Assembly: GCA_965603825.1 (NCBI GenBank)
Contig: CBFDEM010000044.1
Coordinates: forward strand, 434,001 to 498,000
Direction: 5' to 3'
Source: Blepharisma stoltei ATCC 30299
Lineage: Eukaryota; Protista; Ciliophora
Length of the DNA stretch: 64,000 nt
Shown here in pieces: positions 37,038-42,913 of this stretch. The first letter of the stretch is position 1; every line of letters begins with the position of its first letter. Both the position numbers and the translations under genes were made by a program. The notes beneath the pieces were generated by a model that was not told the origin of the DNA, did not search any database, and worked only from the letters and a program-made list of their open reading frames with translations.

Positions 37038-37220
37038 TTAAAACAATAAAATTATTTAAGCTGAGCCTTTAATTAAAGTTTCTTTTATTTATATCAGGTT
37101 TTATCTTCCAAATAAGAATTTAATCAGATTTTAATTTAAATTTGTTCATTTTTCCTTTGCAATTTCTCGATAAAATTTATCGTAAATAATCATTCATTTA
37201 TAAGAATTTAGTGGACTCCA

Positions 37221-37505
37221 ATGCCAAAGAAGAGAGGATTTTGCTTTTATTACTGCCTGCTTATATCCATTTTTGCTTCGCTTTTCTTGGTAAGCACTAA
37301 GTAGACTTATATTGCTTTATTGTGTGTTGCAGATTCCTTACAACTTGACGTAGAGGATAAGACTGAGCATTCTTCGACAGTTTTTATTGCAGCTGGGTTT
37401 TATGAATTTATAGCTGTATTAATGCTCATTCAAGGCTTTTTATGCACCAAGCGTCAAGGTCCAGTTCAAAATGAAGGCTATCAAAAGTTGGAAAATAAAG
37501 AATAA
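37221..37505 (+). CDS. RNASEK / V-ATPase Vo subunit f-like 2-TM protein
   Basis: Intron 37290-37304; 'CLLISIFASLFL...VFIAAGFY' matches the RNASEK pattern. Confidence 0.65.
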
Positions 37506-37869
37506 TAGATAGATATTAGGACTTTATATGCTTAATAATTCATTCTATCTGAAACTCAAAAATTGCACATATCTGTGCTGAAATTCAAGCAAATTAATTC
37601 AAAAAATTAGTTAATCATGAATGTAATAGTTTGGAATTATTCTAAAACCAATATGGAATTATCAGTAAATCTAAACAACCCAGAAATAAGCTTTTTATAA
37701 TAAATAAGAAAAGGTATCTGTCAAACTAATATAAAAATTATCTAATAAGTACTACTATTTTGATTATTAATAATAAGTATTTTAAATACCTTAAATTAAA
37801 CATAAGATTTTTATACTTCTATTTATATATAAATTAGCTGGCATCTAAAGCCCTCTGATAAACTATAAA

Positions 37870-40746
37870 ATGGATGACGAGATTATAACTTCAAGCTTTT
37901 TCGAATGAATCGAAGCTAATGAAGACACATATGACTATCCGATACTCTTCAACTCTGCAGAGCATCTTGTGCTTACTTTTACTCTTGACAACAATCTAAT
38001 TAAGTTTGATTTCCAAGAAGTCTCCGCTACTTCAAGTTCCTCGAGTGCTCCAATCAAATCATGGATAGAATGGGTAAACTCCTATTTAAATGATCGTGCA
38101 GGCGAAATTTTGACTGGGGAAATTAACCTAGGCCAAATCCTTGACAAAGTAATTAAAAAATACTCAGAATTCAAAGAGTTTGACTCAGACCAGGAAGGAT
38201 TTTCTGATGAAGGAGAAGAGGAAGAAGACATGGACATTGACTATAGACAAGAAATTATTAGAGCTAATCAGGTCGAAGAAATAAAAAATGCACAAAGATA
38301 TGGAAAAGGAGACCATTCCATGGAAGGAATTGCAGAGTACGCAGAAAAGCATTTTATTTTCCAAGAAGCCCAGAGAGCTGTGGAGTTGCTGGAAAGCACC
38401 TTCCAAAGATGCCCGCAGCTGAGGCACTCATGCAAAATTTATAACTACCCAGCGTTATGCAATATCAGAATTGAACTGGATCTGGCGTTTTTGGATATTT
38501 CAGACAGTGTGATGAATATGTTGGGGCTAAATTATGATAATCCATTGACGATCAGCATGACTATCAGCGAAATAAAGTTAGTTCAAAGCTTAGAAGAGAC
38601 CCAATGAACCACCTCTTTGTTGGGATCGTTAGGCTTTGAAGTCCTACAAGGAGGCTCGATGGACTCTTATGGCTGTAGAGAATATATATTAGGAAGAGTT
38701 AGAAAATTCCGAGATGATACTTACAATTGCATAAAAGCTCATGACTACCTGCCTTCAGTTCTTGCACTGTCTAGAGAAAACAGTGTTGAGCCTGATTCAA
38801 AAGGAATTGAGCATGCCGACATTCTAGAAATGATTGAGATGGGTTTTTCTGAGCAGCAGTCAGTTGCTGCTTTAAGGATTGCCAGAAAAAATAAAGATGT
38901 AGCTATAGATATGCTGACTGGAGGCATGAACCTAGGCTATGGAGTTGATTTCCAAGATGTCATCATCCCATGCGACAATTTCTTTTATAACTTGCTTTTT
39001 TATATAAGAGACCGCCTACAAAAATGCACCAATTACTGCTTTATTTGCTATAAAAAGCATGAATTTGAGTCAATGAGACTAAGGCCTTGTGCACAAGAAA
39101 TATGCGAATTTAGGTTCGAAGAGATTTCAGGACTTTCACTATATGCAGAATTAAGGTCAAATATGGACTTAGCGATGCTAGATTTGTCATTAGCAGCTGA
39201 AGCTCTTACGTCTCCTAGAGCGCTCACTATTTTTGAGCCTTTTCCAAGTTTCATGCTTAAATCTAACCAAATCAGAGGAAAAGCAGGATTTCTCAGCAAA
39301 GGAAGTGTAACTTACTCATCTGATATGGACTCTAATAAAGACATAAACCTTCTTCAACAAATTTTTAGAGCCATGCCACATCCGTCAGCTTTATTAGAAC
39401 AATCTCATGATGAAAATACTCTACGCGAAGCATTAACAACGATGTTAGGAGAAAATGGAACACTTGGATATAAAATTATGAGGTATATTGTAGCTACAAA
39501 CCGGCTGATGCTTGTAAACTTAACTGGGAATAATCGAATAAAGCAGCTAGATAGAGTTCAGCAATATTTCGTCACAAATCACCCAGCTGAAGTTGAGAGA
39601 GCATTTCAAGCCAAGAAAAAGCAAAACGGCTCATTTTTTGCTTTTCACGGGAGCGCTATAGAGAACTGGTACTCAATATTGAGAAACGGCATCAGAAATC
39701 TAAGTAACACGCACATGATGACTTGTGGAGCTGCTTATGGGGCAGGTGTTTATTGTGCTGAAAACATAGCCACGTCACTAGGGTACACAAGAATGTCTGC
39801 TGGGAATTGCATTTGACCTCATGGGAATCTTCATTGTTCTTCAAAAGGATGCATGGCCATACTGGAAGCTATTAACAAATCAGCAAATAAAAGCAGTGGA
39901 AGTGGCATTTATGTAGTGCAGGACGACACTGATGTTATCATTAGATATCTCTTGATTTTTAGTCAAAGTGACATTGGCGGAGTCAGCGTAAATGTGTCTG
40001 ATCTTGGACTAGACAAGCATTATAAAAATTTTTCGGAGTCATTGAAAATAAGAGCACAAGAAATCAAGCAGCAAAGAATCAAGTCAGCAGTTGAAAGATC
40101 ACTTAAAAAAGAACAAGAAGAGCAAAGAGCAAGAAAGCACTACGAAGAGTATAAAGTCATTAAAAAAGAAGCAGAAGAACAAGACCATCATCTTGATTCA
40201 AAACTTTCAAGCCTAGAAAAAGCTTATGCTGGCCAAGGCTCCACAACTTCAAATAAAAGGATCCTTCAAGAGTATAAGTACCTGCAAAAGTCAAAAGAAT
40301 GTAAAGGCTTAACTGTGGAGTTTGAAGGTGGCTCAAATATATATATTTGACTTGTCCATTTAGATATGAACAAATTTGAGATTCCAAATGAGCTTAGTCA
40401 GGATTTCGAAGCCTACGCAAAGCGTTACTCAAGAGAGAAAGAAATGCTTTTTGAAGTAAGATTTGACTCGAATTTCCCATTTAATCCTCCGTTTGTAAGA
40501 GTAATCAGACCTCGTTTTGCATTTAGAACAGGGCATATTACAGTAGGAGGGTCAATATGTATGCAGTCTTTGACTTCATCAGGGTGGATTCCTGTGAGGA
40601 CAGTTGAAAGCATTTTTATAGAAATTCTATTCAATATGGCTGAAGGTGGAGCAAAGCTTGACGCTACACAAGCTCACATCGATTATACACTTTCTGAAGC
40701 TCAAGATGCATTTAATCGTGTTGCAAGGGACCATAAATGGATTTAA
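37870..40746 (+). CDS. UBA + PARP6/8/16-like ADP-ribosyltransferase + UBE2Q-like E2 fusion protein (958 aa)
   Basis: One frame with TGA=Trp at 37906, 38605, 39814, 40348. UBA 'MIEMGFSEQQSVAALR'; ART 'FAFHGS..NWYSILRNG..GAAYGAGVY'; UBC 'FPFNPPFVRVIRP..GHITVGGSICM'. Confidence 0.9.
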
Positions 40747-40894
40747 GTAATATTCAAAATATTATTATAATTTCTGATTCCTTAATTTTATTGTTAGCTT
40801 ATTGATTATATATAATAAACATATCAGAATCAGCTCGCTTAGATATGCATTAATTATCAGGAATAATATCTTATGATTTTATATTGCATAATAA

Positions 40895-42913
40895 ATGTCT
40901 AATATCAGGGGCAACATGCTTTTCGAGCCAAAAGGTCGGATAACTAGACTTTTAGAAGGCAAAGATTTGCCTGCTTCATTGGTGAACACATCAGAGATGC
41001 CAGCCAAAAACCCAATATCAAGACTCGCATCTTCTCTTTGGAACTATCTTTTTCCAAAGGCACAAATCAATATGCTGGTGCGGCCATTGCTCTTTTCTGA
41101 AGATCTCCCTAAAATCAAGCCGCTTTCAAGTGTGATGGAAAATGCTCCTACACCTAGATATACATCTATTCCTGAAAGTCATCCAAAGACTCCTCCACTA
41201 TCATGTTTGAATCGGATGAAAAATTTAGAGAGTGAGGCTAGCACTGTGGAACGACGCAAAAGAAAATGTCCAGAATCTCGGTTTTCTGATGGGGTAAAAA
41301 AGGTGAAAGTTGACTGTGCGGAGACAGGGGTCCAAACTGAGCTAAGAAGACCAATTGAGTCACTAGCGTATAAAGCTCAGAAGAATGCTCCAGCTGTAAA
41401 ATCTATGAAGCCGACGTGGGGAAGGCTCTCTATATCTTCTGCTGAACTCCCATCAAGCAAGTGGAATGGCCTGAGAACTGTAAAAAAGGAAGAATCTGGA
41501 AAAGAGCTATTTGAGAAGAACTTTGAAAAGATATTCAATAAGAATGATTTTAGGACTTTAAGTGAAGTAGTAAAGAAGACTGATTCATTAGAAACTTCGA
41601 TGGATACAAAAGGAACAGATTCAGAGGAAGAAAAAAAGAATTCGAGGCCGATATTTAGAAAAGATATTGAATCGCTTAGTGTTTCCAGCCATTCTTCAGA
41701 TATCAAGCAAGGCGAAAAGCCTTCTCTTTCACTTATGTCTGAATATTCCATTTCAATTAGTGGTTCAAAACCTAAACATAAAGAATCAGTCTCAAAGAAA
41801 AAAACAATTGAAATTGCGAAGGTTTCTGGCACAGAAATTAAAGCAAACACTAAATCTATAAAGGAAACGGAACCTAATAAGCAATCCAGAGTTGGCTTTG
41901 AAAAACTATCCTCAAGCACAAGTGAAATTAAAGAAACTGACCAAGAAAAAAATATTTTTATTTTCCCAGAGCCTACAAAAAAAGAAAAAGCCCAATTCCC
42001 AATTTTTGGTAATAATTCCAATTCTCAAGAGGGCTTTGGGAATTTGGTTAAAAAGGAAGAGAACAAAACTCAGCCGTTTAATCTCTTCAGTAATGTCCAA
42101 AATGCTCAAGTGGATTTAAATACAAATACTATTAAGAAGGAAGAATCAAGTGCTATTCAAAACGAAAACAAAGAAAAAGAAATTGAAAAAATTTCGAAAG
42201 CAGAGTCAAGTATTTTCAATAAAACTTTGCCAGCAACTTTGACTAATCAAAACCCATTTGTGCAATTAGAGAAAAAAGATAATGATAATCAGACTGTAAA
42301 TTCCAACACAAAAGATTCATCATCTCTATTTCAATCTCAAAACCCTTTCACACCTCAAAATACCAAAGTGGATACAAAATCACTATTCCCAACTCCTTTT
42401 TCCACCCCATCAATATCTTCAACCTCAGAACCAACCAAAGTTCAAGACACTGAAAAATCCCAGCAGGTCGTAAATCCCTTCTTAAACCTGAACTCAGTCA
42501 ACTCCGTTAAGCTTCCATACGTTTTCGGAGCCAAACAGCCAACTCCACCACCTATGACTTTCTCCCCCACATCAAATCCATTTGCTCCATTCCAATCACC
42601 TCAACCTGAGATGACCCAAGACATCGATATGAAAGACGGAACTCCTCAATCAAGTCCCAAACTTGCCCCTCAATCTCAGCCTATTTTCACTCAAAACAGC
42701 TTTTCGCTCTTTCAATGTGCAACTCCAGTCCCCTTAAGCGTGCCTTCAACTCCTTCTCTATTATTTTCTCCACAAAGTTCAGCCTTCATGCAAGGAAACA
42801 CAAGTTTCTCATCGCCGGTGCCAATGTTTGCTCAAAGCCAGCCAGCCACCCCTTCTCCCAGCACCCCAGGATCGTTTACATTAGGAGTGGTATCCAAGAA
42901 AGGAAAAAGATAA
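40895..42913 (+). CDS. Low-complexity Ser/Lys/Pro-rich protein with NPF/Phe motifs (nuclear basket nucleoporin-like)
   Basis: Bipartite NLS-like RRKRK...KKVK; several NPF and FG/FS motifs; basic tail 'FTLGVVSKKGKR'. Confidence 0.55.
   Translation: MSNIRGNMLFEPKGRITRLLEGKDLPASLVNTSEMPAKNPISRLASSLWNYLFPKAQINMLVRPLLFSEDLPKIKPLSSVMENAPTPRYTSIPESHPKTPPLSCLNRMKNLESEASTVERRKRKCPESRFSDGVKKVKVDCAETGVQTELRRPIESLAYKAQKNAPAVKSMKPTWGRLSISSAELPSSKWNGLRTVKKEESGKELFEKNFEKIFNKNDFRTLSEVVKKTDSLETSMDTKGTDSEEEKKNSRPIFRKDIESLSVSSHSSDIKQGEKPSLSLMSEYSISISGSKPKHKESVSKKKTIEIAKVSGTEIKANTKSIKETEPNKQSRVGFEKLSSSTSEIKETDQEKNIFIFPEPTKKEKAQFPIFGNNSNSQEGFGNLVKKEENKTQPFNLFSNVQNAQVDLNTNTIKKEESSAIQNENKEKEIEKISKAESSIFNKTLPATLTNQNPFVQLEKKDNDNQTVNSNTKDSSSLFQSQNPFTPQNTKVDTKSLFPTPFSTPSISSTSEPTKVQDTEKSQQVVNPFLNLNSVNSVKLPYVFGAKQPTPPPMTFSPTSNPFAPFQSPQPEMTQDIDMKDGTPQSSPKLAPQSQPIFTQNSFSLFQCATPVPLSVPSTPSLLFSPQSSAFMQGNTSFSSPVPMFAQSQPATPSPSTPGSFTLGVVSKKGKR

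Follow-up and report, generated by a model that had tools for sequence, protein, structure and literature searches.

The TGA-interrupted reading frame and its transcript

The window studied here is a stretch of 64,000 nucleotides from Blepharisma stoltei ATCC 30299. The macronuclear genome of this strain has been described as 41 Mbp in 64 telomere-to-telomere contigs, with UGA reassigned to Trp and with introns of 15/16 bp (PMC9942806). The assembly contains 41,464,486 bases in 64 contigs, while the window has a G+C content of ~34% and introns of 15 nt. In this window we observed a frame which, when UGA is read as Trp, encodes a single protein of 958 residues (Table 1). The order given for it in a preliminary description of this DNA (UBA, Cys cluster, ART, linker, UBC) could be traced along the chain with Pfam matches and located motifs. 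The neighbouring frames have ordinary eukaryotic products, namely a kinase, an Hsp70, an RCC1-repeat protein, a DEAD-box helicase and the V-ATPase subunit C, and numerous other long frames of the window have in-frame TGA codons but neither TAA nor TAG.

Table 1. Position of the features of the PARP-Ubc gene (coordinates of the window) and of its paralogues (coordinates of the contigs named)
Feature	Position	Strand	Residues and basis
Transcript extent	37844..40770	+	combined span of two RNA-derived contigs; intronless, UTRs short
Coding sequence	37870..40746	+	958 codons plus TAA; read UGA=Trp
RWD-like domain 1	37870..38178	+	residues 1-103; homologue model
Acidic linker	38179..38328	+	residues 104-153; 17 D+E against 5 K+R; pLDDT 50-60 in the homologue model
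PARP6/8-type RWD-like domain 2	38329..38745	+	residues 154-292; shape match
UBA domain	38821..38916	+	residues 318-349; PF00627, E 2e-6, 28.0 bits against a cut-off of 22.4
C4 zinc-finger motif CX2CX13CX4C	39037..39105	+	C390, C393, C407, C412
Helical extension (HE)	39139..39495	+	residues ~424-542; PARP16-like model; weak ARTD15_N Pfam match
ART (PARP catalytic) domain	39508..39975	+	residues ~547-702; Pfam, PARP16 alignment, model
ART triad	39646-39648; 39751-39753; 39907-39909	+	H593; Y628; I680
Charged linker	40012..40254	+	residues 715-795; 41% D/E/K/R
UBE2Q-like UBC domain	40255..40743	+	residues 796-958; UQ_con 36.8 bits against a cut-off of 27
UBC key residues	40534-40536; 40558-40560; 40732-40734; 40738-40740	+	H889; C897; H955; W957
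Second full-length paralogue	C54:786431-789313	-	960 residues, two TGA codons
ART-less gene, RWD-like domain 1 + acidic stretch + UBC	C23:524266-525258		PARP core wholly missing
ART-less gene, UBC alone	C25:52930-53517		

The in-frame stops of this frame are TGA alone, at 37906, 38605, 39814 and 40348, and the terminator is a TAA at 40744. The preliminary description had assembled the protein from four open reading frame pieces. The length of 958 residues was correct, but the pieces are five, the first having only 12 codons. We examined the TGA positions in an alignment of 38 rows, made up of the read-through translation, 36 homologues no shorter than 800 residues and the full-length paralogue from the same genome, and these positions were found to be Trp in 29/38, 31/38, 37/38 and 38/38 rows. 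Human PARP16 likewise has a Trp opposite the TGA at 39814 (codon 649), and the TGA at codon 827 is the conserved Trp of the N-terminal sheet of the UBC domain.

Transcription was followed by mapping contigs from three runs of the same organism onto positions 37100-41400. The X1 contig (2900 nt) covered 37873-40770 and the X2 contig (2884 nt) covered 37844-40727, both with 0 mismatches and 0 gaps. As these runs carry only the label 'RNA?', their RNA nature was read from splicing and poly(A): the contig of the upstream neighbour is missing 15 nt at 37289, where a tiny intron has been spliced out, and has a poly(A) loose end at 37526, and the contigs are therefore taken to be RNA-derived. No contig covers 37532-37819, and the downstream gene has a contig of its own that begins at 40907. 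Since single contigs, gapless and free of mismatches, span the gene, the ART and UBC halves are co-transcribed, the gene is intronless, and the RNA retains the TGAs unedited. These data agree with the single polypeptide and with the RNA continuity across the TGA sites that had been anticipated: the frame is open apart from TGA, single contigs cover the whole of it, and separate ART and UBC transcripts were not seen.

Four breaks appear in the frame when the standard code is applied, as would be expected if the TGAs were true stops and the region consisted of several short proteins or a pseudogene. All four sites, however, are conserved Trp, many long frames of the window are interrupted by TGA only, and the whole frame lies under one transcript. 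On these three grounds we ruled out a standard-code reading as separate genes or as a pseudogene, and the probability that we leave to true stops is close to nil.

The gene could also be followed in other material. A 2891-nt contig of a second organism covered 37878-40761 with 246 differences and no gap. P0001, a transcript-derived ORF from the sister species, was collinear with the window protein and identical at 654/695 residues; it begins at the first Met past codon 246 and has W at codons 649 and 827. This pattern would be expected of a standard-code ORF caller if TGA and TGG interchange at Trp between the species. The gene showed no introns, the RNA contigs being collinear with the DNA and the orthologue collinear and gapless. 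A protein identity of 94%, against a nucleotide difference of ~8.5% to the sister species, points to purifying selection on the sequence.

The N-terminal half contains two RWD-like domains, a UBA domain and a C4 zinc-finger motif

A Pfam scan of 32 N-terminal regions (~300 residues) recognised no family, and a comparison between the profiles of the N-terminal region and the UBC domain gave a probability of 0.2%, that is, no detectable sequence relation. The fold was therefore read from the AF2 model of the homologue P0043 (44% identical here; pLDDT 83.9), in which an acidic stretch of low confidence lies between two folded modules. The first of these (pLDDT ~90) gave VIA-align Z scores of 5-7 against the RWD domains of GCN2, RWDD1, RNF25, listerin and Knl1, and against E2s; these middling values support an RWD-like domain 1 as a fold class only. 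By shape, residues 133-283 of the model resembled animal PARP6/PARP6a/PARP8 clusters in the ESM Atlas. Against the PARP6/PARP6a cluster, 127 residues of the predicted RWD-like domain 2 aligned with an rmsd of 3.7 and a TM of 0.50 (by target). An RWD Pfam annotation is carried by 33% of this matched cluster. A Foldseek search of the N-terminal model against the PDB returned nothing at E <= 0.001; the weak rows included RWD-containing kinetochore proteins and some E2s. The earlier reading of one N-terminal domain followed by an acidic linker thus needs a partial change: the acidic stretch is present, but it is flanked by two RWD-like domains rather than preceded by one domain.

The UBA domain was found where it had been placed (~38810-38930), with a PF00627 match above the cut-off, and its MGF/Y motif was retained in 32/38 homologues. 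The Cys cluster noted before was also present, and all four cysteines were invariant (38/38 homologues). A motif of the form CX2CX9-19CX4C was defined for PARP6/8 homologues by Perina et al. (PMC4245714), and a C4* ZnF was described by Suskiewicz et al. (PMC10450202). The cluster fits both this motif and the C4* finger, and is a putative zinc-binding site.

The ART domain is of the PARP6/8 type

Pfam was run on the separate TGA-bounded pieces and the scores were compared with the curated cut-offs. The PARP catalytic domain (PF00644) scored 44.8 bits against 26.7, on a piece that has only the N-terminal half of the domain. For the fold from the zinc finger to the ART we used the AF2 model of the 94%-identical orthologue (pLDDT 82.7, pTM 0.80). 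It matched human PARP16 with an E of 3.6e-14 over ~286 columns and a TM of 0.78-0.80 (by target). PARP16 chains occupied ranks 1-10 (E 3.6e-14 to 3.8e-12, TM 0.76-0.80), and the next family, PARP3, followed at 1.7e-9. The match spans HE and ART and lies well above PARP3, PARP12 and PARP1. In the comparison of the sequence with solved structures, too, PARP16 was nearest to the ART half. The preliminary description had put the ART fold at ~39625-39960; the ART was confirmed, but the folded domain extends beyond these limits and is preceded by the HE.

Both H593 and Y628 were present in 38/38 homologues and aligned with the His and Tyr of PARP16, while Ile was found at position 680 in 34/38. The motifs G-x-G-[VI]-Y and H-G-S are both intact, and the proposed H-Y-I triad could be read directly as HGS with H593, GVY with Y628 and GIYVV with I680. 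The triad of PARP6/8 is assigned as H-Y-I. As a mono-transferase signature, H-Y-I characterizes clade 6 (PMC2964712). An affinity to PARP6/8 had been suggested earlier from the triad and the Cys cluster, and the C4 motif, the RWD-like N-terminus, the PARP16-like HE and ART, and the H-Y-I triad all argue for it. From its RWD, C4 finger, HE and ART, the protein can therefore be described as a full PARP6/8 homologue into which a UBA has been inserted and to which a UBE2Q-like E2 has been appended.

By analogy with the family, the ART would bind NAD+ through H593 and Y628, and since Ile replaces the catalytic Glu, it would be expected to transfer single ADP-ribose units. With the catalytic Glu missing (I680), the ART might instead be without transferase activity and act as a module that binds NAD+ or ADP-ribose and directs a functional E2; activity data for clade 6A were not found (PMC13720257). 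We regard this as quite improbable, since H593 and Y628 are invariant, both motifs are intact, the fold matches PARP16 with a bound NAD analogue, and mono-ART activity is known for H-Y-I PARPs, PARP10 among them (PMC2964712).

The UBC domain has an active-site signature of its own

We observed that the best solved relatives of the UBC domain were UBE2Q2 (4.2e-17) and UBE2Q1 (1.8e-16), with UBE2D thirteen orders of magnitude behind (~3e-4; 2.8e-4). The catalytic Cys that had been pointed out earlier is present as C897 within GGSICM, and it was kept in 35/38 homologues. The HPN motif is absent from the domain, and the segment upstream of the Cys reads RPRFAFRTGH. At the Cys-8 position, His889 takes the place of the Tyr343 of UBE2Q1. 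The chain ends with H955-K-W957, of which H955 aligns with His409 of UBE2Q1. When compared with the Tyr343-His409-Trp414 triad of UBE2Q1, therefore, the Tyr is replaced by His889, and the Trp lies two residues past the His and not five.

The four residues H889, C897, H955 and W957 were conserved together in 35/38 homologues, from ciliates to ferns. In the three others (P0067, P0069 and P0070) the Cys, His889, His955 and Trp957 have been lost together, and this joint loss suggests that the four may work as one unit. In the PARP-Ubc proteins of fungi (Madurella, Podospora, Penicillium) we find G-H-V-T-x-G-G-x-M-C-M with a C-terminal H-G-W. Thus the PARP-linked UBC, as judged from these alignments, is marked by its own conserved active-site signature, a His at Cys-8 and a C-terminal H-x-W. 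This His-Cys-His-Trp site is conserved from fungi to ciliates and is distinct from metazoan UBE2Q.

UBE2Q1/2 are active without HPN, and they ubiquitylate Ser, Thr, glycerol, glucose and maltoheptaose; the Tyr343-His409-Trp414 triad is needed for hydroxyl-directed discharge by UBE2Q1 (PMC10971424). By analogy with its family, the UBC domain would be charged by E1 on Cys897. Like human UBE2Q1/2, it would probably need no classical RING E3 for the discharge of ubiquitin, in line with the E3-independence that the preliminary description had considered possible, and would prefer hydroxyl acceptors. However, UBE2Q-like hydroxyl chemistry is not assured, because of the His in place of Tyr343 and the H-x-W rather than H-x4-W spacing.

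The UBC domain might also be a non-catalytic E2-like scaffold, comparable to the RWD domains of human PARP6/8, with the protein acting as a mono-ART only. Human PARP6/8 indeed bear only non-catalytic E2-like folds (PMC10450202), three homologues persist after the loss of the Cys and its partner residues, and HPN is missing. Yet 35/38 homologues, with a range from ciliates to ferns, have Cys897, H889, H955 and W957, as do fungi; UBE2Q1/2 are active although they too lack HPN (PMC10971424), and the ART-less paralogues (see below) retain both the UBC and its Cys. We consider the scaffold improbable. The homologue alignments and the RNA contigs show that both predicted catalytic centres are intact and conserved and that they are co-transcribed in one chain.

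The protein is a ciliate member of the PARP-Ubc family

More than 25 protein clusters of 917-1018 aa were found with PARP and UBC domains, most of them also with a UBA, at 42-58% identity; named members of these clusters include the ciliates Protocruzia and Euplotes crassus, and a fern. Among UBC-region matches in the range of 382-1216 aa, all 39/39 carry a PARP domain, the fungal ones included. The architecture, with its UBA, is thus already widespread and is not new. PARP6/8-UBCc fusions have been reported from Ascomycota, Basidiomycota, a moss and Chlamydomonas (Citarelli 2010, PMC2964712; Perina 2014, PMC4245714), and a UBA on PARP6/8 homologues of Acanthamoeba and Trichomonas (PMC4245714). 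One preprint calls the PARP-UBC fusion fungal-specific (10.64898/2026.07.25.740670), although Perina 2014 already had the moss and the green alga. That such fusions are known but barely characterised, as had been stated before, agrees with the literature (PMC2964712, PMC4245714, PMC13720257), in which we found no description of UBA, ART and UBC together in ciliates and no published enzyme activity for any PARP-Ubc protein. On the evidence of its domains, the protein is a ciliate member of this described, biochemically uncharacterised family. It is very probable, in our view, that it combines a PARP6/8-type (clade 6) mono-ART with a UBE2Q-like E2, two RWD-like domains and a UBA, and that the PARP-Ubc family is pan-eukaryotic.

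With the fungal PARP-Ubc/fPARP2 proteins (clade 6A; PMC2964712, PMC13720257) it has in common the RWD-like N-terminus, C4 finger, HE, Glu-less ART and C-terminal UBE2Q-type UBC in one chain, as well as the UBC motif G-H-[VI]-T-x-G-G-x-x-C-M with a C-terminal H-G/N/K-W. In contrast to the fungal proteins, the ciliate protein has a UBA and is 958 aa long (against ~1150 aa), and the UBC domains are just 36-38% identical. Its HE model is helical except for one low-confidence loop, without the fungal-type beta-barrel insertion, and we therefore take it as a non-fungal relative rather than a strict member of clade 6A. Human PARP6/PARP8 (clade 6D) share the (split) RWD, C4* zinc finger, HE and ART (PMC10450202), but are without UBA and without a catalytic UBC. 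Human UBE2Q1/UBE2Q2, the nearest solved E2s, likewise lack HPN and have an N-terminal RWD and a C-terminal UBC (PMC10971424), but there is no PARP core between the two.

The Blepharisma genome has a second full-length paralogue, with an identity of 61% for residues 263-958 and of 55% for the 262 residues before them. The two ART-less genes retain the same type of UBC, with its Cys. In a maximum-likelihood UBC tree they nest within the ciliate PARP-UBC clade (supports 98/91 and 97/58), the branch of the C25 gene being long, and thus both look like secondary ART-less derivatives. Since they have kept the UBC, the E2 module appears to be valuable on its own. The C23 gene has the same layout as animal UBE2Q1/2 (PMC10971424).

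Possible coupling of ADP-ribosylation and ubiquitin transfer

From the two centres in one chain we infer that ADP-ribosylation may be coupled to ubiquitin transfer, as the preliminary description had proposed. The UBA and RWD modules could keep ubiquitin or an E2 surface close, and we propose that both marks would thereby be written on the same target. Whether this would extend to placing ubiquitin onto ADP-ribose itself is more doubtful, and we regard such a transfer as rather unlikely. Ubiquitin esters on ADP-ribose are known as products of the DELTEX ligases (PMC12000418, PMC12203941). DTX3L-PARP9 and the DELTEX E3s also join a PARP-family module to ubiquitin machinery and make ubiquitin-ADP-ribose esters (PMC12000418, PMC12203941), but they are only functional analogues: the polypeptides are separate, and the chemistry is that of a RING-DTC E3 and not of an E2.

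A tethered, presumably sugar-reactive E2 beside a mono-ART would make a writer of ADP-ribose-ubiquitin in cis plausible. The ART would set mono-ADP-ribose on a target or on the protein itself. Through its His-Cys-His-Trp site the tethered E2 would join ubiquitin by an ester bond to a hydroxyl of the ribose, with the product or the donor ubiquitin bound by the UBA. PARP-Ubc would then be a self-contained, E3-independent writer of a hybrid ADP-ribose-ubiquitin mark, and an ancient, DELTEX-independent route to MARUbylation; we offer this tentatively, as an idea with perhaps a modest chance of being correct. When the complex of the ZnF-HE-ART core of P0001 with its UBC was predicted, the score was 0.00, a value that speaks neither for nor against an intramolecular contact.

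The ART could instead modify ubiquitin itself, presented by the UBA or as the E2~Ub thioester, an alternative that the preliminary description had also raised. UBA, E2 and ART do lie in one chain, and ubiquitin-ADP-ribose chemistry has precedents (PMC12687431, PMC12203941). However, the precedent once ascribed to PARP9 has been reassigned to the DTX3L E3 (PMC12203941), and we give ubiquitin as the substrate very little probability.

The cross-talk of ADP-ribosylation and ubiquitylation is an active field, with the ubiquitin-ADP-ribose esters of DELTEX and the hydroxyl-directed ubiquitylation by UBE2Q1/2, and PARP-Ubc proteins hold both machineries in one chain. The locus does not reveal a new kind of system. 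It adds that a ciliate possesses and transcribes the complete architecture with the UBA, that the PARP-linked UBC carries a conserved signature of its own, and that ART-less paralogues appear to have been derived from PARP-Ubc. As a compact, intron-free gene, it could be used to ask whether one enzyme writes both marks. The genome as a whole contains 11 PARP-domain loci and two Deltex DTC loci, so that PARP-Ubc is not the sole possible link between ADP-ribosylation and ubiquitin in this organism.

Paralogues and related UBC genes

We observed that the domain order of the PARP-Ubc protein (RWD-UBA-ZnF-ART-UBC) is repeated in a full-length paralogue in the same genome (locus L002), which is approximately 61% identical to the window protein. 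Two in-frame TGA codons are present in this paralogue (codons 65 and 695). In a sister species, the transcript ORF corresponding to it (P0005) has an end that coincides exactly with a TGG tryptophan codon of L002.

Two further loci carry the same type of UBC without an ART. In the L005 protein, the RWD-like domain 1 and the acidic stretch are retained together with a UBC that is 66% identical, whereas RWD2, the UBA, the zinc finger and the ART are absent, a layout that resembles UBE2Q. As its UBC is nested within the PARP-UBC clade in the tree, the PARP core appears to have been lost in this lineage. The stand-alone UBC (L006) is of the same subtype as that of the main gene (55% identical), and lies on a long branch adjoining the window's own UBC.

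Related UBC genes, Deltex-type loci and neighbours of the PARP-Ubc gene
Feature	Location	Strand	Details
Full-length paralogue (L002)	G000:C54:786431-789313	-	960 residues
RWD-UBC gene (L005)	G000:C23:524266-525258	+	330 residues
Stand-alone UBC (L006)	G000:C25:52930-53517	+	195 residues, one TGA
Deltex C-terminal (DTC) domain match	G000:C14:16808-17191	-	E 1.8e-48
Deltex C-terminal (DTC) domain match	G000:C56:84464-84847	+	E 8.4e-44
Small upstream gene	window 37225-37526	+	RNA contigs
Downstream frame	window 40895-42913	+	672 residues

Pseudo-E2 homologues and Deltex-type loci

Three metagenomic homologues of ~970 aa (P0067, P0069 and P0070) jointly lack the UBC cysteine, the histidine at Cys-8, and the C-terminal histidine and tryptophan, but retain the ART triad despite this loss. 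Judged from these residues, they are a pseudo-E2 variant within the PARP-Ubc family.

As both DTC matches in the genome are strong, the ciliate also has DELTEX-type candidates for ADP-ribose ubiquitylation.

Neighbouring genes and transcripts

In the RNA contigs of the small upstream gene, 15 nt are missing at 37289, where a tiny intron has been spliced out, and there is a loose poly(A) end at 37526. Together, these features establish from the data themselves that the runs consist of RNA. The downstream frame has a separate RNA contig of its own (cover from 40907), contains zero TGA codons, and gave no match in Pfam.

Stretches of 18-21 nt are common to the acidic and charged linkers of the PARP-Ubc gene (window 38146-38163 and 40159-40179) and an unrelated transcript contig about 1.6 kb long; this is probably low-complexity similarity only.
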